Source: Zygnema circumcarinatum SAG 698-1b (Eukaryota > Plantae > Zygnematophyceae). Taken from it: a DNA stretch of 64,000 nucleotides. Below, piece by piece: positions 3,001 through 43,097 of the stretch. Every line of letters begins with the position of its first letter. Positions within the stretch are counted from its first letter, which is position 1. A program made the translations under genes and the position numbers. The notes below the pieces were generated by a model. It was not told where the DNA came from. It saw only the letters and a program-made list of their open reading frames with translations, and did not search any database. Location: NCBI GenBank assembly GCA_037447605.1, contig CM074816.1, positions 821,873 through 885,872 on the forward strand, given 5' to 3'.

Positions 3001-3968
3001 TCTCCGTTTAGCGGACCCGTCCAAGCCTTATGAAGTGGTTTGTGACGCTTCGGGATTCGCCTTGGGTGCCGTCTTGTTNNNNNNNNNNGTGAAAGCGTAT
3101 GTACTCGCTTGTCCAACTTGTCAACGAAACAAACCCCGCACTGGCAGGATCCCTGGCCAGCTGCATCCCCTCACACCTCCTTTTCGGAAATGGGATAGTG
3201 TGGGTATGGACTTGATCACAGATCTTCCTGTGACACCTCGGGGGCATGACTCCATCCTCGTCTTTGTCGATCGGCTCAGCAAGATGGTGCATTTTGCACC
3301 AACTACTAAGACAGCTGGGGCCGACGAGATTGCACGGTTGTATGTTGACAAAGTGTGGAGCCAGCATGGTCTTCAGTCAGAAATTGTGTCTGACCGTGAT
3401 CCACGATTCACCGGCCATTTTTGGACGGAAGTGCTCAAGATCGTTGGGACCAAGCAGGCGTTGAGTACAGCTTTCCACCCGCAAACTGATGGCCAGACGG
3501 AACGGGTGAATAGGATCCTGGAGGATTACCTCCGGCATTATGTGGGACCTACCCCGGATGGGTGGGACGAACTGCTCCCAGTGGCTGAGTATGCCATCAA
3601 TAATGCTTACCAGGAGTCCATTGGTACCACCCCTTTCTTCTTGAACTTTGGCCAGCATCCTCTAAATCCCCTGCAACCAAGGGATCAGCCCCCTGATCCG
3701 TGGAACATGGGCGTCCACAGAAACCCCGATCCTTGGAAGCTGAGAGGGACTGATGGGACTCAACCTCCCGCAGTCAGATCTTTTGTCCGGCTAATGTCTG
3801 AGGCGCTGCAGAGGGCACGGCAGACCCTGCTAGCGGCCCAGTCGCGACAAAAGGCCTATGCTGACCGTCACCGTACCCAACTCACCTTCAACGAAGGCGA
3901 TGAGGTGTTGCTAAGTACGGCGAACTTGAGACTCAAAGCTTATGGCGGAACACGTAAGCTGTGGCCCC
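1..3968 (+). mobile_element. Ty3/Gypsy LTR retrotransposon, internal region (gag-pol), both ends outside window or in gaps
   Basis: Frameshifted gag remnant at ~455-1030 (WDKF..LIKHFGALDP..EARDK..M.QTSSV; KLTPEE plus degenerate zinc knuckle). Pol order PR-RT-RH-IN: [65 protein letters not shown]. Confidence 0.95.
1108..3968 (+). CDS. Gypsy Pol polyprotein (extra N-terminal domain, protease, RT, RNase H, integrase), interrupted by N-gaps and a frameshift near 2940
   Basis: ORFs 1108..3033 and 2942..3968 carry the motifs listed for the element. Confidence 0.9.
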
Positions 3969-3978
3969 NNNNNNNNNN

Positions 3979-4188
3979 AGAAAACAAGGCGAGAAACGTT
4001 AGATTTGAAAAAACCGCAGCAAAACAGCAGCAAAACAACCAAAAACAAAAAACAAAAAACGAAAAGAAGCACAAACAACAAAAACAGAGCAATGCAGCAA
4101 GACACGCGACAGGAAAACGCAAGACAACGACAAGAGGCTGCCACGTGGCCGCGGCAGAGGCAGCGGCAGCAGGCGCAACGGTCGGAAG
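3979..4188 (-). mobile_element. 5' end/UTR of a non-LTR retrotransposon, second copy of ~53095-53304
   Basis: Near-identical to 53095-53304. Both copies end at ..CGGTCGGAAG with unrelated flanks, and the other copy is linked to RT motifs. Confidence 0.7.
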
Positions 4189-4749
4189 CGCCGTTGAAGT
4201 CTTTCTGTACTAAGAATCCTCTTTTCCATCGTAAAACTTTCACAGAAAAGAAGCAATTTTGAGTAAAACAGCTTACCTCTTGTGAAAGGTTAATTGTATC
4301 GAACCTCAAAGTGTATAATACGGATCTATAGTCCTGACGCGCTCTGAGACCCCCTTAAGCCGTCGTGAGCCGCCGTCCCCTCCCCTCCCCTCCCGTCCGT
4401 ACAGCGAGCAAGCGGGCGCGAATTTCATTGACCGCCGCTGATTGGTCCATAGCGCGCATTTTTTTTTGGCTCGCGGCCTCCTCTATGCCATGTCGGTAAC
4501 ATTATGTAAAAAATGTCGGTGGATGCATCTAGACCGTTCATTATGTCGATGGGTCCAACCATCCGTTCGAAGTATGGCTTACGCGTCACCGTCAGCCCGT
4601 CCCCGTCCCCGGCCATGGCGGACGGGAAGGAAGGCGCCCTGCTTCCCCGCGGACCCCTCCCCGCCCTCGCCCTCGCCTCTGCCCGCCCTCGCCCCCGCCC
4701 CCGCCCCCGCGTCCCGTCCCCTGGTGTCGCCGGCGGGCGCTTGGCCGCG

Positions 4750-7700
4750 ATGGCGCGCGCGCGGTCCCTCTCTCTCGCGGCGGCGGTCCTCCTCTTTGCC
4801 GCCGCCGCCGCCCCGCGCGAAGCCGCCGCTCAGGCCATCGACCCGCGAGACAGTGAGCCGCCGCGGCCCGCCCGCCCGCCCTCTATGGAAGAAGGGGAGA
4901 GGCGGCCTGCCCGCGGCGGGGCCTCTGTTTGTGCTTTTTGAAGCGGACCGCGGCCTCAATCCAATCCTGCATCTGCTCGCGCTTGGGCGCAGGGGACACT
5001 CTTCTCGCTGTCAAAGCGGCATTCAACAACGTACAACAACTCAAGTCCTGGAAAGCGAGTAACCACAACTGCAGCAAATGGCATGGGATCACATGCGATG
5101 CAAACGGCCGCGTTACTGCGTTGTGAGCCACACTTTGACTGAACACAGCTTTTGATGTTGGAGGCTCCATGGATTCCATAGCTGCTGAACTGCAGGCTGA
5201 GGCTGCGAGGAGGGTCTGCGGGAAGAAGGCTCCTCAGAAATCGGCTAAAAAGGGCCACCCGGAGCAGTCTTTCTACTGCCCGCAGCCCTTTCTTCTTCTT
5301 ACGCTCTCACTGCTAACTGCCTAATGCAGAGATGTAGGGGGCTTCGACGTTCAAGGAAGCATTTCACCAGCCATCGGCAATCTTACGAATCTGAGATACT
5401 TGTAAGTATTCTTCCCCATAAATCTGAGATGCCAGTGATAGAAATGCTAGTCGTGGCAGCATGTTTATTCACTGTCGATTTTTTTTATTTTTTGCAGAGG
5501 CTTTGGTTTCAATTCCCTAACGGGATCTATCCCGGATTCTATCGGCAACCTTGCGAATCTGTACTACTTGTAAGTGGTGTTCCCCTAAAAATTAAAATGT
5601 AAGAGAAAGAAATGTTAGACAGAAAAATGCCAGTGATAGAAATGCTAGTCGTCGCAGCATGTTTATTCAGTGCTCATTTTTTTTTTTTTTGCAGATACTT
5701 GCAATCTAATTCCCTAACGGGGTCTATCCCGGATTCTATCGGCAACCTTTCGAATCTGTACTACTTGTAAGTGGTGTTCCCCAAAAATTTAAAATGTAAG
5801 AGAAAGAAATGTCATACAGAAAAATGCCAGTGATAGAAATGCTAGTCGTGGCAGCATGTTAATTCAGTGCTCGTTTGTATATTTTTTGCAGATACTTGCA
5901 ATATAATTCCCTAACGGGGTCTATCCCGAATTCTATTGGCAACCTTGGGAATCTGTACTACTTGTAAGTAGTGTTCCCCATAAATTGAAATTGTAACTGA
6001 AAGAAATGTCAGACAGAGTAATGCCAGTGATAGAAATGCTAATCGTGGCAGCATGTTTATTCAGTGCCCTTTCTTTATTTTTGGCAGATACTTGTCTGCT
6101 TGTTCTCTGACGGGGTCTATCCCGGATTCTATCGGCAACCTTGCGAATCTGAAAGAATTGTAAGTATTTTTCCCCATAAGTCTGAAGTGAAAGTGATAGA
6201 AATGTCAGACAGAGGAATGCCAGTGATAGAAATGCTAGTCGTGGCAGCATTTTTATTCAGTGCCAATTTATTTTATTTTTGGCAGAGTCTTGGGTTCAAA
6301 TTCCCTAACGGGGTCTATCCCGGATTCCATCGGCAACCTTGCGAATCTGTACTACTTGTAAGTAGTTTTCCCCATAAATCTAACATGTAAGAGAAAGAAA
6401 TGTCAAACAGAGGAATGCCCGTGATAGAAATGCTAGTCTTGGCAGCATGTTTATTCAGTGCTCTTTTTTTTTATTTTTGGCAGATACTTGTCTGTTAACT
6501 CCCTAACGGGGTCTATCCCGGATTCTATCGGCAACCTTGCGAATCTGCAAGAATTGTAAGTATTTAAGAAGCTGAAAGCTCCTCGCCCCGTATCAGATCG
6601 CACTGACTTGTCGAAAATTTTCCATCCAATCACGTCACAGTGTCAGATACGCTTCATATCCTTCCCTACGCCACTCCTCCGATCCGTCCGCTGCCGTACT
6701 GCACTCTCGTACTTCCTCTTGCCCGTGCCGGCCTGCGAGCGGCCTTCTGCCGGGCAGATACAGCATGTTTAATCAGTGCCTGTTTATTTTAATTTTGGCA
6801 GAGGCTTGGGTTTCAATTCCCTAACGGGGTCTATCCCGGATTCTATCGGCAACCTTGCGAATCTGTACTACTTGTAAGCATTTTTCCCCATAAATCTATA
6901 ATGTAAGAGAAAGAAATGTCAGACAGAGGAATGCCAGTGATAGAAATGTAAGTCGTGGCAGCATGTTTATGACGAAAGCACAAACAGCCTTTTTCGGCAT
7001 CTCCTCCTCCATTCCATGCTGTTTTCTCTCCCCCTCCCCCATCCATGGAGGAGGAGATGCCGTGAAGCTTCTCATTGGTCGTTTTGCACGTGGCAACTTC
7101 GAGCTTCGGTTTGCATTTGAGCAATCATTCTTCATATTTTTTTTTTCGTTTTGCCGCAAAACATTTGCCGAGCTTGCGAAGCTTTTTATGAAGATCAGTC
7201 GATGCTAATTCACATGCAGACGCTTTACTAATTATAAGGGGCGGCATCCCGAACTCAATTGGGAACCCGTGCAGCGACTTATTGCATCTTGCAAAGCAGC
7301 AACGTTCGATGATGTGTATCCATGATTGCGTGGCAAATCTTTGCCGTGTAGTTTTTGTCAATTTTGGTGTCTACATGCGAGTAAAATTTTAATCTCGCAC
7401 TGCTTTTGTGAGACTGCGTTTGAAAATTCTACTATAGAACGTGGAGTTGAATACTTGATTTATTCCTGTTCAGTCTAGAACCAGCCTTATCCTTTTCGTT
7501 GAGCTTTTGTCGTTATGTATGTGTGTAGGGACCTAGGCAACAACAAACTGGAGGGGAGAGTGTCCGGCTTCATCTCTAAACTCACCCGAGTGTACTTACT
7601 GTAAGCACCGCTGCATCGATAACGTTGTAGTTACAGTTTGAATTTTTGTTCTCGGCCGAGCATTTGTATCTCTCAAACTATTTGCATGAGTTTTAAGTTT

Positions 7701-10700
7701 ATCTCACACTTCTGTCATATAGTTGGTCACTTCTGTCACGGCGGGGGCTTTTTTGACGCACAATAACACGCACTTTTGCATGCGAGAGATTGGACTTCGT
7801 TGTTGAGATTTAAGGATTTCGAGTTTACGGATTAGGGTTAGGGGTTGAGGGGTTAAGGTTTTAGGTCTTAAACTCGAGGGGTTCAAGGGCATATGAGTTA
7901 AAGGGTTTAGAGGCCACGGGGGTTTAGTGGGTTCACGGTTTATGGGATTGCAGGTAGAATGGATATCGGGAAAGGCTAAGAGATTTAGGGGTGCAGTGTT
8001 TGAAGGCTGAAGTTTGCGTAGGGTCGTGAAGATGGCGTCATAGACTTTGCAGACAGCACAAGCGAATGTTTCAGTGGTTGGGACATAAGGAAGACTTGAA
8101 CGGGTTCCTCTCTCTCTCTCGCTTTGTCTCTAACGCGCCACCCTTAATGTCATCAGGTGGTTAAACAACAACAAGTTGACTGGCTCCATTACTCTTGCAG
8201 TCGATATCCTTAATGACCTGGGGTTGCAAGACAACTACTTCTCCGGGCCAATCAATTTTACAGGGAACGGGCAACCTTACTGCTACTCCAACTATACCAA
8301 CAACTGCATTTATCACGACGTCGCAGGGTGTGGCCCAGCTCAAGAGCAGAGACCTCCGCAAGAGTGCGCGGCCTTCTGCCATAGCGGTTCTCCCGAGGGA
8401 GCGTGCGGGGGCCGTGGCACGTGCGGGTACGACACGGCCACGTGCACATGCGACAAGGGATATGCGCTGACATCGGGCACGTGTGGTGAGTTGCAACCTG
8501 CTGTTTGTGGATACTCGTAAGAAAGGAAAAGAATAGGGCGGCATATGTTGTGGAAACTATCGCACTGCTATCAACTTTTACACTGTCCTTGCTGTTAGAG
8601 TACACTGAATGCGGTCCATTTGATGCCGCCAATAGAAGAGGTTCAATTCTCGACCTTCTAGAAGCACATGGTAAGTACTACTTGGTGAACTCTGCAAGCC
8701 CATATATATGGTGCAGAGTTTATTGGGATATATCGAGTGCTGCTCCCATATCAGGGTTTTAGCTTTCAATAATTTTCTCGACCCAATCCAATCCTGTGCA
8801 AGCCACAACATATCTTGTCTACATTTACAGTAGCTAGATAACCTGCGAGTTTGACTTTTCTGCTTCTCAAAGAGAATTGCGTAGCCCGAGAAATGACACA
8901 GGAATCTGATTTTCTGTGGAGATGCACATAGATGATGAAATATGATGTCAGAAGTCTCGTTCTGCACCCTCCCAGAACATTTATAAGGACGTGTTTCGAT
9001 TAGAAAATGTAAGTTATGGACGAAGTGAGTTCGCCTTTAATTATGAACGGGAACTCACACAATGCCCTGCATTCCTGCAGCTTCACGATCCCCTCCTCCG
9101 CGTCCACCTCCTCCTCGTTCTCGGCCCCCTTTGAAAAGCCCCCCTCCACGTAAGCCTCCTCCCAGCCGTCGACCCCCTCCACGTAAGCCTCCTCCNNNNN
9201 NNNNNGTGGAGTTGAATACTTGATTTATTCCTGTTCAGTCTAGAACCAGCCTTATCCTTTTCGTTGAGCTTTTGTCGTTATGTATGTGTGTAGGGACCTA
9301 GGCAACAACAAACTGGAGGGGAGAGTGTCCGGCTTCATCTCTAAACTCACCCGAGTGTACTTACTGTAAGCACCGCTGCATCGATAACGTTGTAGTTACA
9401 GTTTGAATTTTTGTTCTCGGCCGAGCATTTGTATCTCTCAAACTATTTGCATGAGTTTTAAGTTTATCTCACACTTCTGTCATATAGTTGGTCACTTCTG
9501 TCACGGCGGGGGCTTTTTTGACGCACAATAACACGCACTTTTGCATGCGAGAGATTGGACTTCGTTGTTGAGATTTAAGGATTTCGAGTTTACGGATTAG
9601 GGTTAGGGGTTGAGGGGTTAAGGTTTTAGGTCTTAAACTCGAGGGGTTCAAGGGCATATGAGTTAAAGGGTTTAGAGGCCACGGGGGTTTAGTGGGTTCA
9701 CGGTTTATGGGATTGCAGGTAGAATGGATATCGGGAAAGGCTAAGAGATTTAGGGGTGCAGTGTTTGAAGGCTGAAGTTTGCGTAGGGTCGTGAAGATGG
9801 CGTCATAGACTTTGCAGACAGCACAAGCGAATGTTTCAGTGGTTGGGACATAAGGAAGACTTGAACGGGTTCCTCTCTCTCTCTCGCTTTGTCTCTAACG
9901 CGCCACCCTTAATGTCATCAGGTGGTTAAACAACAACAAGTTGACTGGCTCCATTACTCTTGCAGTCGATATCCTTAATGACCTGGGGTTGCAAGACAAC
10001 TACTTCTCCGGGCCAATCAATTTTACAGGGAACGGGCAACCTTACTGCTACTCCAACTATACCAACAACTGCATTTATCACGACGTCGCAGGGTGTGGCC
10101 CAGCTCAAGAGCAGAGACCTCCGCAAGAGTGCGCGGCCTTCTGCCATAGCGGTTCTCCCGAGGGAGCGTGCGGGGGCCGTGGCACGTGCGGGTACGACAC
10201 GGCCACGTGCACATGCGACAAGGGATATGCGCTGACATCGGGCACGTGTGGTGAGTTGCAACCTGCTGTTTGTGGATACTCGTAAGAAAGGAAAAGAATA
10301 GGGCGGCATATGTTGTGGAAACTATCGCACTGCTATCAACTTTTACACTGTCCTTGCTGTTAGAGTACACTGAATGCGGTCCATTTGATGCCGCCAATAG
10401 AAGAGGTTCAATTCTCGACCTTCTAGAAGCACATGGTAAGTACTACTTGGTGAACTCTGCAAGCCCATATATATGGTGCAGAGTTTATTGGGATATATCG
10501 AGTGCTGCTCCCATATCAGGGTTTTAGCTTTCAATAATTTTCTCGACCCAATCCAATCCTGTGCAAGCCACAACATATCTTGTCTACATTTACAGTAGCT
10601 AGATAACCTGCGAGTTTGACTTTTCTGCTTCTCAAAGAGAATTGCGTAGCCCGAGAAATGACACAGGAATCTGATTTTCTGTGGAGATGCACATAGATGA

Positions 10701-11075
10701 TGAAATATGATGTCAGAAGTCTCGTTCTGCACCCTCCCAGAACATTTATAAGGACGTGTTTCGATTAGAAAATGTAAGTTATGGACGAAGTGAGTTCGCC
10801 TTTAATTATGAACGGGAACTCACACAATGCCCTGCATTCCTGCAGCTTCACGATCCCCTCCTCCGCGTCCACCTCCTCCTCGTTCTCGGCCCCCTTTGAA
10901 AAGCCCCCCTCCACGTAAGCCTCCTCCCAGCCGTCGACCCCCTCCACGTAAGCCTCCTCCCAGCCGTCGACCCCCTCCACGTAAGCCTCCTCCCAGCCGT
11001 CGACCCCCTCCACGTAAGCCTCCTCCTAGCCGTCGACCCCCTCCTCGACGTCCCCCTCCGATCCGTTCTCCTTGA
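4750..11075 (+). CDS. Secreted LRR protein: signal peptide, LRRNT, about 10 LRRs, Cys-rich EGF-like module, basic Pro-rich tail; no TM or kinase domain seen
   Basis: Exons with GT-AG sites and matching phases: 4750(alt. ATG 4615)-4852, 4993-5122 (LRRNT: TLLAVKAAF..LKSW..NCSKWHGITCD), 72-nt LRR exons at 5330, 5498, 5695, 5892, 6088, 6286, 6484, 6802 and 7529, 8157-8485 (LRR cap plus QRPPQECAAFC..GACGGRGTC..CTCDKG), Pro-rich terminal exon 10846-11075 (partial copy from 9081). Confidence 0.85.
5330..6973 (+). repeat. Tandem array of ~197-bp units (72-nt LRR exon plus ~125-nt intron)
   Basis: Seven near-identical exons (..NSLTGSIPDSIGNLANL..). The introns are also homologous (ATGCCAGTGATAGAAATGCTAGTCGTGGCAGCATGTTTATTCAGTGC). 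Confidence 0.97.
7441..10960 (+). repeat. Apparently identical 1755-bp direct duplication (offset 1765) flanking a 10-N gap; probable assembly overlap
   Basis: 7441-9195 matches 9206-10960 and both copies give identical ORF translations. Confidence 0.85.
10900..11050 (+). repeat. 33-bp coding repeat, about 4 copies, encoding RKPPPSRRPPP
   Basis: Unit CCCTCCACGTAAGCCTCCTCCCAGCCGTCGACC within the terminal exon. Confidence 0.9.
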
Positions 11076-12580
11076 GCCCCTCCTCCCGTTACTGATGCTG
11101 GTACTCTTCGCCTTGTCCCTTGACACCTCCTATGGCGTCTGCTGCGTAGTGTTGTCTTTCTTCTTATCATTTTGGAATGTCTGGATTCGACTCTGCACAA
11201 TCGTTGTACTTGAAGATGCGTTGCTCCCAATACTTGTTTTGTTATCATTAGGCTTTCTGATGGGAAGTCAGCTTTTGCTTTACGAGAGATCCGTTATAAT
11301 CCTCTTCACAAGACATTAAGAGTTATCTTACTGCATCAAATTCCTAGAGAGGTCATTTGTTGCTTTAAAATAACGGATACTTTTCATGCTTTACTTAAAA
11401 TCTCCTCCATTCGTGTTCCTGCTTTCTTTCAAGATTCACCTACCTTCATCGGCCTGCTCCTGACGGTCTCCTTTGCATGCAGGCGTGCCTTGAAGCGGCG
11501 GATTGGGGCCTGCGTGATGACAAAACACCGACCGGCCGCGGCCTCAGCGAGTGCACGTAGGTATGCGACTTTTGTCGCATGCGAGAGCGGCCCATGGGCC
11601 GCGTGACGCCTCTCCTCCCTCCTTCGCACCTTCAGAGGAGGGTGAGGCGGTCAAACTTAGTATGGCTCTCCAATAGTGTGCGTACCTGCATATGCATGGC
11701 ATGATGAGGGAGTGGACGCACCATGGCAGTGGCATGCACAGGGGATGCATAATGGATGGATGGATGGATGGTTCGTCGTCGGCTTTCGTTTCTCGTTGGC
11801 ATTGCGGCGTCATGCGGACAGTCGATCGCGGCCTTTGGTTGGGCAGCAGACTATGATCGCGTTTCAGTATCGAGATATGTGATAAGTTGAAAATCGTGCT
11901 ATGGAATGTTATGAGCTGCCTTTGTTTTTTTTTATCTTCTTTTTGGTGTCTGGCACTTCGGGTCGATCTGCTCGAAGTAGAATGGGCGAGAGGGGGTCAG
12001 TCCCGTCACGTCTCGTCATGTCTTGTTTTGTCGCGTCGCGTCACCTCGCCACGTCTCATTATGTCGCGTCGCGTCACGTCACGTCACGTTACGAGTGCGT
12101 CCACGGACGAGGCCAAATCAATTCCTTCCTGTTTAGGGCTGCGCGCTCGCGTGGTGCGGCCGAGGGATGCCATCAGCGTGGCCGCGGCTCTGAAAGCGGC
12201 GGCAGGGCGGTAGCGTGATGTTGCGGCGACGCGGGCAGCTCGAGAAAGGTTTTACCCGCTCAATCCGTGCGACGATCGCTTCTGAATGGCGGGCTAGATT
12301 CCGGGCAGCCATTAAAACGTTTGGCCGCGACAGCTCGCGAGTCGCGACGCGCGCGACGCCCCTTTGTAGGGACTATATTTTTTGGCCGGGCTCGCACATG
12401 CGACAAATTGGACCGTTTGCGCCAGTGGCGCGCGCCGACTGGCTTGCTGCGGATGGGAAAAAAGAAAAAAAAATGACGTAGGCGGGCCTGCGATTTGAGA
12501 CATGGTCCTTGTGGTGATGACGTCATCCAGGTCTGCTCCGGACCAGAAATGGCAAAAGCAGGGCGATATTTTTTTCTCTC

Positions 12581-40152: not shown

Positions 40153-43097
40153 TCCGTTGTAATTGATGAAGCTATCGCCGGACGCCTCAATAGTGACAAC
40201 GGCCACTTGCTGCTGCAGGATGAGCAGGAGGCCGAGCCAACCGTTGAACTGCACCTGCTCGTAGGAGGACACTCTCAGCGCATTGTCGCCCTGCAGACTC
40301 CGCACACAAACTGTAAGCTCGGGGAATAGCTGCCTATTACAGTTGGCAGGGCTTTTAGAGTCTGAGTAGATGCAGTGACAAAAGTTTGATCGTATCTCTT
40401 TTAGAATGTTCTTACCTGTCCGCAGCTGGAAGAGTCCACGAAGTTGGATTGCAGCAGTAAGTTGTTGCTCAAGGCATATTCGAGCGTCTCTGTGGGCCAC
40501 CCTCCGGCCCCGCACGTTTTGTTGCTCCCCGAGCAGGTCAGGACCTGATCCTCCGCCAATTGCGGCACCGGAGACTGCCCACCGCTTGCGATGTACAGGG
40601 CGCTTTCTATCGCAGATATCGGAGCGAATATCCAACATGTACCTACAATTATGCAAAATATGAAGATTGTGTTCAGCAGTAACGAACATTCATCAGAACA
40701 GGAGAAGCACTTGTGATGGAAGAGACGGTGCGGTATGCAGGAAGATGAGATCAGGATTAGAGGTTTGGAGGCCATTGATGAACATAGGCTAATTTGTAGG
40801 AAGGGATCAAAGGACCAGTCTTTCTAAAGAACTAAAAAACGAACAAGCAGTCGAGTTGAGCAAGAATCTGCTAAAAAAAAGTGCACTTACTGCAATTTTT
40901 TTGATCTTTGATGCTCTGAACAGCTCCCTCTTCAGTCCAGTTCCACGAAATGGCGACCTGCCACGAACCTTTGCCGCTTCTTCGCCTCAAATAGCCCGAG
41001 CTTACATACCGAAAATAGGGATTCACCTTTGTAATAAGGGTAGTCGTCAGATTGAGACCAGACCCACGCCCCTCTGCACAGATTTTTTTTCAATGTGTGA
41101 ATTCCAATAGCACATAAAAGTAAACAGACCTTCAACCTGAAAACTCAAAAAATGTAAGAACACCATCAAACCTGCCCATCTACAGATCAGGTTGAATGGT
41201 TACGTAAGCAAGTTAAAGCTCCCATCTTGACAAGTCTATGAGTAGAGAGCGAGTCAGAAGGGAAAAGAGGTATGTAGCACTCACCAAACACGCAGGAGAC
41301 ATTATTGGCGGAGGGTACAAAGCCGCTAGTGCATGCACATGTGGGTTGGCTTCCGTTAAGATAACAAAAGCCGTTTCCTCCGCATGCGCCTTGAGGCTGA
41401 GTCGCATTGCAGAACAGAGCGCAGGAAGCTGCGTCTCTCTGAGGACTGCACGAACTCACATTTGAATCGGAAAAGCAGTTCATACCAATGCCAGTACACT
41501 GTGCAACAATCCCGTTCACTTTGACGGTGTATTCACCCGACAAGTAGTTGTTACTGAAGTCGAAGGTTGCCTGTCCGATTAACCCGAAGTCGACAACTAG
41601 GGGTCCAATGAGCAGATTATTTGCAAGAGAACTGCACAGCACAGCACAGGATCGCGTTCTGAGCGTTCCGAATTTGACTTGGACTCTGAATTTCAGCGTT
41701 CGCGCATTGAGCTTAGCGTATGGGACGCATCGGTCAAGCTATGGCCTAACTCGCTTAAACTTTGGGGCCTAAGTCTGGAAAATCATTTGCCTCATGAAAG
41801 TTTAGCTTCAGCTACTTCAAATGAGTTGAGCGTTTGATTGCACAGTTCGTCCTCAGTCAGCTTACATCGTCTTGATAGCCGAAAGCCCACCGAGGCTTGC
41901 AGGAACACCACCTGTAAGTTGATTGAAGGATAAAGTCCTGTGGACGACAAAAGAGCCAATGAAGAATTCCGGATATTCCAGAAATCACTCGAAATTGACC
42001 TCATGTGCTTGACTGAGGTGCAGACTGCCACGCAGGCCTATAGTCACAGTTTTCTGCTCCTTCCTCCTCTACATTCTCTTCCTGGAAACGAATGCAAAAT
42101 GCACGAGAGATTATTGCCATGTGAACAGGCCACACACACTTACAAGTACTTGAGGCTATTGAGGGTCCCAATTATTGGAGGAATGGCGCCGCTCAGTAAA
42201 TTGTTGCCAAAGTTTCTGTAATCATGCGGCAAGTTGTCGATTTTCGTTAAGCCAAACGTAGAAAGATCAAGATCATCCAATCCATCTCTATATGCTATGA
42301 TACTCATGAGAATGCCTTCAGCTGGTCCCAGCAAGTGAAAGACTTATGCAAAAGATGTACACAATTGAAACCTGGAGGCAGTTCAAAATCCTTAAATGCC
42401 CTCCAAAGAACTACGAATTTCGAGAATTAACATTTCCGATTGATTCCCCTTCAAGAACTAAAATTCTGCACCATCAGTGTTACAGATCACAGATAAAAGC
42501 AGAGTGATGGTTAGAGACCGGTTTGCCACTCACAGGGTCCTTAGAGCAGTGGCATTTCCAAGGGAAGAGGGAATGTTCCCAGTCAATTGATTATTTGACA
42601 AGTCCCTGCAACAAGTGGGAAAAGAAAAATGTTACAATAGCTCCGTCATGTTATTTTTGCCTGACGTATTCGTTCAGAAGGGAGTACTAAAACAAACTGC
42701 CATGGTGCATCAACATTTTATGGCTCGCCCCAGGCGGCTGCATCCAAAGAGTACTTTTAGCTATCTTTGGAGGAAACCATTCAATACGATTTAACACCCC
42801 ACAACTGCTCAGTATGCAACAGATTGGCATTAGAAGGAAGCCAAATCCTTCATTTCTCAAAACACCTTCCTACTGAACTAGCTTTTCCATCCTATCACGG
42901 ACTCGGCTAATCATAGGAAAACAGGCAGGCTGTAGACAACGTTGCAACAAGATAAGAGGCCATTCCAGCAGATCATTTTGGCACCGGATTGACTTGGAAG
43001 TATTGGGTGAAACGGAGCAACATACAGTAGTTTCAGGCTTTGCAGACCTCCGATTGAATCCGGTATACTGCCTGTGAAGTTATTGTTTGACAAATCC
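40153..43097 (-). CDS. Middle part of a split gene: LRRs, Cys-rich EGF-like module, papain N-terminal half
   Basis: 72-nt LRR exons 43097-43026, 42605-42534, 42215-42144; exon 41631-41285 (QRDAASCALFC..GACGGNGFC..CAC); C1A exons ~40958-40892 (SWNWTEEGAVQSIKDQKNC), ~40642-40415 (STCWIFAPISAIES..GGWP), 40290-40153 (..SFINYNG). Confidence 0.85.

Follow-up and report, generated by a model that had tools for sequence, protein, structure and literature searches.

In the alga Zygnema circumcarinatum SAG 698-1b, a single gene carries seven tandem exons of 72 nucleotides (nt), each of which encodes one plant-type leucine-rich repeat (LRR), and the codons of the ligand face in these exons fall into three discrete types. 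The gene lies in a 64,000-nt stretch of contig CM074816.1 (assembly GCA_037447605.1, positions 821,873–885,872 of the forward strand), which we call the window and number from its first letter. We propose, at a probability of about 0.62, that the array arose by germline tandem amplification within the LRR domain of this one gene, after which new face variants were selected and then recopied. Brown algae and ciliates are already known to have arrays that grow in this manner, and the locus is an instance of it rather than a novel machine for making diversity.

Seven exon–intron units in tandem

The seven array exons lie on the plus strand (Table 1), with AG before and GTAAG after each of them, and a homologous intron of ~125 nt follows each exon. 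Every exon begins with base 3 of a leucine codon and ends with bases 1 and 2 of the next leucine codon, so that both flanking introns are in phase 2, and it encodes a single LRR of 24 residues. The original prediction, made from the letters of this DNA, of seven tandem phase-2 72-nt exons with homologous introns was borne out in coordinates, phases and peptides. Tandem Repeats Finder described the array as 5.8 copies of a 197-nt period with 86% matches. Cores of 33 nt from the exon and 36 nt from the intron were each found seven times at up to three mismatches, with none expected in shuffled sequence; at the same threshold, neither core had a copy outside the array in the window. Exact-pattern scans for the two cores likewise returned no match in public metagenome contigs.

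The framework of the array exons, SLTGSIP(D/N)SIGNL(A/S/G)NL, is nearly invariant. Together with the junction leucine, all seven exons fit the plant-specific extracellular pattern LxxLxLxxNxL(t/s)GxIPxxLGxLxxL, from which they deviate by one Cys in place of Asn and one Phe in place of Leu; both replacements are tolerated by the LRR consensus. Single array exons matched Pfam LRR_1 below the cut-off only, as expected for one repeat. Variation is displayed at the exon starts (GFGFN, YLQSN, YLQYN, YLSAC, VLGSN, YLSVN and GLGFN, in order) and at the exon ends (YY, KE or QE). Because every possible exon–exon junction in the array restores a Leu codon, in-frame skipping of any array exon would be formally possible, and the earlier claim that any subset of exons can be removed in frame is true in this formal sense.

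Face codons change faster than neutral sites

In plant LRRs, the x positions line the concave sheet of the repeat domain, which is established structural knowledge (cited in PMC3341825). We defined the face as LRR positions x2, x3, x5, x7 and x8, amounting to 15 nt of which part closes one exon and the rest opens the following one, and compared it with the remaining 57 exon bases and with the introns (126 alignment columns). The mean pairwise difference across units was 0.47 for the face, 0.06 for the rest of the exon and 0.133 for the introns. Among units 1–5, 12 of the 15 face columns were variable; the remaining exon bases varied in 11 of 57 columns (Fisher p = 2e-5 against the face) and the introns in 34 of 126 (Fisher p = 1e-4), and the contrast was still present when the face was compared with the fastest part of the introns (20/51 columns; p = 0.008). 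These counts uphold the predicted clustering of changes at the x positions of a near-invariant framework.

Nei–Gojobori estimates gave a non-synonymous divergence (dN) of 0.85 for the face, whereas the framework had a synonymous divergence (dS) of 0.12 and a dN of 0.045. Framework dN far below dS indicates purifying selection on the framework. The face codons change roughly five to seven times more quickly than neutral sites. The excess of non-synonymous change that had been anticipated at the x positions is thus present, but limited to differences between the face types described below. The amplification itself appears to be young, because the array introns are still 82–92% identical to one another.

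Face types largely descend with their upstream introns

The face codons form three discrete types, which we denote G (units 1, 5 and 7), Q (units 2 and 3) and S (units 4 and 6). Within a type, the face differs by 0.12 and the introns by 0.116; between types, the corresponding values are 0.58 and 0.142. Since face divergence within a type proceeds at the intron rate, the array is not continuously hypervariable, and is better described as three binding-face variants on a near-uniform scaffold. Of the ‘rapidly evolving recognition repertoire’ and ‘hypervariable’ codons that the original prediction proposed, the face excess therefore stands; ongoing diversification does not, given three types with intron-rate change within each, and neither does a repertoire, given one germline gene. 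Discrete types that are neutral within themselves sharpen the question of whether selection acted in a burst, the scaffold was homogenised or face patches were imported.

We then considered how the units are related, using a neighbour-joining tree with pairwise deletion built from the upstream intron plus the framework. This tree grouped units 2 and 3 at 99% bootstrap and units 1, 5 and 7 at 63%, in agreement with the face types. The tree of the downstream introns differed and grouped units 1 and 2 at 99%. As the upstream but not the downstream intron tracks face type, the copied unit consists of an intron and the exon that follows it. The variant sharing noted previously between particular exons is real, with 0/15 face differences between the exons starting at 5498 and 6802 and 2/15 between those starting at 6088 and 6484. 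Gene conversion or unequal crossover had been offered as its cause; the trees support unit duplication, and nothing points specifically to gene conversion. The shared variants of exons 5498 and 6802 and of units 2 and 3 fit descent by unit duplication, with gene conversion unnecessary. A two-unit (394-nt) duplication of S and G pairs also fits the face pattern, with the neutral sites expressing no preference for a two-unit over a one-unit offset.

These data allow us to propose a course for the growth of the array. Where every 72-nt exon holds a single LRR and is flanked by phase-2 introns, misaligned recombination or slippage would change the number of repeats in frame. Unequal crossing-over or slippage in the homologous introns and frameworks would have multiplied a 197-bp unit of intron plus exon until seven copies occupied the stretch from about 5370 to 6969. 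Many amino-acid-changing substitutions in the five face codons would then have produced the three variants, with introns, synonymous sites and framework staying alike. Later duplications would have recopied each variant, within which the face codons would drift neutrally. We infer both that unequal crossover was the mechanism and that selection for new binding surfaces lay behind the burst between types.

Edges of the array and its introns

The left edge of the amplified DNA lies near 5370, inside exon 5330–5401, because only the 3′ part of this exon is unit-like. Compared with the units, its nt 1–40 are unrelated (28/40 mismatches) and its nt 41–72 homologous (7/32 mismatches, 78% identity; Fisher p = 6e-5), so that it counts as an eighth LRR exon, of chimeric make-up. 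On the right, the array stops at 6969, within the last intron, where homology to the units ends. Further along this long intron lies a decayed LRR exon (Table 1) that may be a lost repeat.

In the array intron at 6556–6801, the middle is replaced by a unique GC-rich filler of ~190 nt (about 6565–6754), which may derive from DNA repair or from part of an element that originated at another place. Within the window, neither this filler nor the unique part of the last intron has a second copy. We rejected a transposon identity for the array intron or the filler, as the cores are confined to the array and the filler is single-copy in the window, and we likewise rejected the array intron as a structured or known RNA (fold z = 0.04; no Rfam match in 4400–11200). 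A 47-nt intron core (alignment columns 58–104, for example 5823–5870) is conserved like the coding framework: 6 of its 47 columns are variable and none is parsimony-informative, versus 20 of 51 variable columns in the 5′ part of the intron (p = 0.005). This conservation could reflect a splicing element, a hotspot of recombination or conversion, or chance.

A predicted extracellular LRR protein

We read the gene model exon by exon and searched the exons singly (Table 1). In the predicted product, a signal peptide and an LRRNT_2 cap precede ~11 plant-type LRRs, which are followed by a Cys-rich EGF-like module and then by a basic Pro-rich tail. Its N-terminal translation contains a basic n-region and a 15-residue hydrophobic core rich in Leu and Ala; further in-frame ATGs lie upstream, and both the start codon chosen here and secretion of the LRR protein are putative. 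Exon 2 matched Pfam PF08263 at 34.6 bits (cut-off 20.7; E = 2.4e-8). The model includes nine 72-nt LRR exons, namely the chimeric exon, the seven array exons and the exon at 7529–7600. A dN/dS of ~0.36 for the framework argues for a working gene, as does the fact that each of the seven array exons has kept its AG/GT sites and the LRR consensus.

The Cys-rich module encoded by exon 8157–8485 has eight cysteines that are invariant among its relatives and follows a last LRR of the NYFSG type; no Pfam family matched this module above the cut-off. In the Pro-rich tail, a few SPPP motifs occur amid KPPP and RPPP units, and the tail has no Pfam match. No kinase or transmembrane part follows the stop codon at 11073–11075, and neither HRDxK nor DFG motifs were found in the gene or nearby downstream. 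An identity as an LRR receptor kinase is ruled out by this stop after the Pro-rich exon and by the lack of kinase motifs downstream. The layout suggests a wall-associated binding protein, for which secretion and wall anchoring are predicted.

A phmmer search with the 109-amino-acid (aa) Cys-rich exon against 1.84 billion representative proteins recovered only 16 distant relatives, at 33–47% identity. Among these were two Mesotaenium endlicherianum proteins and proteins from algal transcriptomes, in keeping with a streptophyte, probably conjugating, green alga as the source. Some of the relatives combine a kinase with a transmembrane helix and a Pro-rich stalk, and one has a Pro-rich tail only, like the present gene. 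Because relatives of the Cys-rich module have both layouts, the search supports what would be a family of extracellular LRR proteins that exists with or without a kinase. The LRRNT_2 score and the Mesotaenium relatives also favour the plant-type, green-lineage context that had been proposed for the gene, with secretion itself a prediction.

Table 1. Features of the LRR gene and its surroundings (window coordinates)
Feature	Coordinates	Strand	Remarks
Exon 1 (inferred)	4750–4852	+	start codon, signal-peptide-like N-terminus; ATG at 4750, donor GT at 4853; splice phase matches exon 2
Exon 2, LRRNT_2 cap with Cys pair	4993–5122	+	ends in TT, phase 2; Pfam PF08263
First LRR exon, chimeric	5330–5401	+	72 nt, phase 2/2; identified by unit comparison
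Intron I0	5402–5497	+	homologous to array introns, without 30 nt of them
Unit 1	5498–5694	+	exon 5498–5569, type G, GFGFN...YY; intron 5570–5694
Unit 2	5695–5891	+	exon 5695–5766, type Q, YLQSN...YY; intron 5767–5891
Unit 3	5892–6087	+	exon 5892–5963, type Q, YLQYN...YY; intron 5964–6087
Unit 4	6088–6285	+	exon 6088–6159, type S, YLSAC...KE, with Cys where the LRR consensus has Asn; intron 6160–6285
Unit 5	6286–6483	+	exon 6286–6357, type G, VLGSN...YY; intron 6358–6483
Unit 6	6484–6801	+	exon 6484–6555, type S, YLSVN...QE; intron 6556–6801, middle replaced by filler
Unit 7	6802–6969	+	exon 6802–6873, type G, GLGFN...YY; first 96 nt of the last intron
Decayed LRR exon relic	7213–7283	+	peptide remnant GGIPNSIGN; GT donor absent and reading frame disrupted; within the long last intron
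Next LRR exon	7529–7600	+	72 nt, phase 2/2; unrelated to array units (40/72 mismatches)
Exon with the two last LRRs and Cys-rich EGF-like module	8157–8485	+	ends in phase 1; weak EGF_2 and EGF_Teneurin matches below cut-off
Start of Pro-rich last exon	9081–9195	+	interrupted by 10-N gap 9196–9205
Duplicate of 7441–9195	9206–10960	+	1755 nt, 100% identical; directly after the 10-N gap 9196–9205
Pro-rich last exon, complete	10846–11075	+	33-nt tandem units coding PPPRKPPPSRR-like repeats; stop codon 11073–11075

Assembly state and neighbouring features

The 10-N gap within the gene falls in the 33-nt Pro-rich tandem repeat, and the 1755-nt stretch that is duplicated around it holds three exons of the LRR gene. 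This duplication is probably an unmerged contig overlap, not biology, and would make the gene's 3′ half appear twice in gene models. The other nine gaps in the window are not flanked by duplications of this kind. Just upstream of the LRR gene, at 3002–4210, lies an integrase-like open frame of a Ty3/gypsy-type retroelement, recognized from its translation only and broken by 10-N gaps.

The minus strand carries a second LRR gene at 41866–43097, with four 72-nt phase-2 exons of one LRR each, separated by introns of very unequal length; the array intron core has no copy in it. One LRR per 72-nt phase-2 exon is thus the general gene structure in this genome, and the array a local amplification, because this second gene combines the same exon design with unequal, unrelated introns.

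Alternative explanations

Several points weigh against amplification followed by selected face change. The neutral distance between types is only 1.2 times that within types, and with the branches between types nearly invisible at neutral sites, duplication plus point mutation calls for an extreme burst, in which 14 or more face substitutions would fall on these internal branches. The S pair (units 4 and 6), although clear from the exons, was not recovered in the neutral-site tree (24–33% bootstrap). The phmmer search of the 1.84-billion library with the 109-aa Cys-rich exon gave a best match of 43% identity, no match below E = 1e-10 and no orthologue. The numbers are also small, at 15 face sites and seven units, and the same picture would be obtained by gene-conversion homogenisation or by import of face patches. 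In the case of homogenisation, the repeats would be old, with ancient and distinct faces that selection spared as short-tract conversion or repeated unequal crossover unified the introns and frameworks. Such a history is favoured by a between-type intron divergence hardly above the within-type value, yet accompanied by a face divergence of 0.58, by the scarcity of variation in the intron core, which lacks parsimony-informative sites, and by the failure of the S-type units to cluster at neutral sites. However, the upstream intron co-segregates with face type for Q and G, as in whole-unit descent, and framework dS equals the intron rate, with no extra homogenisation of the exons evident. Face-codon third positions for which the residue imposes no change are also often common between types (x5 always C; x7 T in Gly and Ser codons); single-base sharing of this kind is beyond the resolution of conversion and therefore leans, weakly and over five codons, to point mutation from a common ancestor, and the match of framework dS to the intron rate leans weakly the same way. 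We consider homogenisation unlikely, although it deserves to be taken seriously. Import would mean that exon-end stretches came from other LRR exons, through exon shuffling among similar arrays or ectopic microconversion and not through point mutation, in line with the finding that all five face codons differ by 2–3 bases per codon between types next to near-identical adjacent sites, and with the between-locus exon shuffling described for brown-algal LRR exons (PMC3341825). But no donor is known, and the sole other LRR gene in the window has neither patches nor intron family in common with the array, which leaves import improbable in our judgement.

A different class of explanation holds that the exons are interchangeable cassettes, from which exon skipping or somatic rearrangement would produce many receptor forms per gene. 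All exons are 72 nt long between phase-2 introns, the Leu codon is restored at every junction and the splice sites of the units are near-identical; moreover, Ectocarpus ROCO genes are reported to combine their LRR exons in alternative ways (PMC11378527), and in one SERK3 transcript of Medicago the first-LRR exon is missing (PMC3061892). The same properties, however, belong to every gene built of single-LRR exons, the non-repeated gene in the window among them, and the array offers three face types only, with no flanking cassette store, no recombination-signal-like feature, no intron RNA structure and no Rfam match. Programmed diversification is accordingly a highly improbable reading of the locus. 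A long shot of slightly better standing is that the 72-nt LRR exon arrays of this alga together form an exchange network that operates by ectopic microconversion of face patches or by combinatorial exon skipping. If this were true, a streptophyte alga near the land plants would have a receptor-diversifying system like that proposed for brown-algal ROCO genes, and the near-absent neutral divergence between face types would be the footprint of patch import, not of point mutation. Last, the number or order of units could be wrong in the assembly, a concern raised by the 10-N gaps on the scaffold, one of them flanked by the perfect 1755-nt duplication. Collapse or expansion by misassembly, which the original prediction had named as a possible refutation, is not indicated: 5330–6973 contains no N, the units are 8–18% apart in their introns, and the longest exact repeat in the array is below 50 nt, so that ordinary reads place each unit uniquely. 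The natural, non-identical array edges and the unique filler in one intron also speak against an artefact, which we regard as scarcely credible. Germline amplification with selected and recopied face variants remains the explanation that we favour.

Comparison with known systems

The LRR exons of the brown algae Ectocarpus and Saccharina are likewise 72 nt long and in phase 2, duplicate within their loci and are under positive selection at solvent-exposed residues of the concave face (Zambounis et al. 2012, PMC3341825; Teng et al. 2024, PMC11378527). The papers on these ROCO and LRR-kinase genes raise variable exon combinations, and describe between-locus shuffling and alternative splicing (PMC3341825, PMC11378527). 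The precedent originally invoked was that of Ectocarpus ROCO/NBS genes; it holds for ROCO and LRR-kinase genes, which carry the LRR exons, but not for NB-ARC genes, which carry TPR exons instead. The present array resembles the brown-algal ones in having one LRR per 72-nt phase-2 exon, local duplication and an excess of change at face residues, here between types. In contrast to the brown-algal genes, which are of stramenopile origin and encode intracellular GTPases or kinases with another LRR class, the present gene is plant-type and extracellular by its predicted design, with LRRNT_2, Cys-rich and Pro-rich parts. It lacks a ROC-COR GTPase or kinase effector domain, as its frame stops after the Pro-rich tail. 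The array works like the brown-algal ROCO arrays without being a member of the ROCO family, because the defining effector domain is lacking.

Tetrahymena has tandem 90-bp LRR exons with phase-2 introns that have undergone clonal expansion by unequal crossing-over (Xiong et al. 2019, PMC6564038). Those arrays share with ours the equal length of LRR exons, the phase-2 introns and a junction codon common to adjoining exons, but their 90-bp exons do not hold one repeat each, and they involve thousands of genes of a ciliate germline, pericentromeric clustering and another LRR class. Nor is the locus a case of somatic cassette assembly as in the lamprey VLR system, which we rejected because the gene is complete, has canonical splice sites and has no cassette cores elsewhere in the 64 kb.

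Among land plants, genes with one LRR per exon, such as the SERK family, and receptor-like proteins that change in LRR copy number share the LRR class and the N-terminal cap with the present gene. The LRR exons of SERK genes are also 72 nt long; they are old and have mutually unrelated introns, unlike the array, whose introns have remained closely similar. One relative, P0001, matched the solved ectodomains of GSO1, FLS2 and PEPR1, and also matched LRX2 (6qxp) with E = 7e-28. By its predicted model, the gene resembles the land-plant LRR-extensins (LRX) in its signal peptide, LRR domain, Cys-rich region and Pro-rich, likely wall-located C-terminus. It differs from them in an EGF-like eight-Cys module that is common to streptophyte-algal receptor kinases and in a basic tail of the PPPRKPPPSRR type, not the classic Ser-Pro(3–5) extensin, and we do not claim LRX membership for it. 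A word-based literature search found no publication on such arrays in streptophyte algae.

Together, these results trace, base by base, how an extracellular LRR domain of the plant type would grow: by harmless addition of repeats, and then by new residues on the face. The conjugating algae, to which Mesotaenium belongs, are the sister group of land plants. As the closest relatives of the gene in the protein library are streptophyte-algal, such arrays may show in raw form the process by which LRR receptors later expanded in plants.

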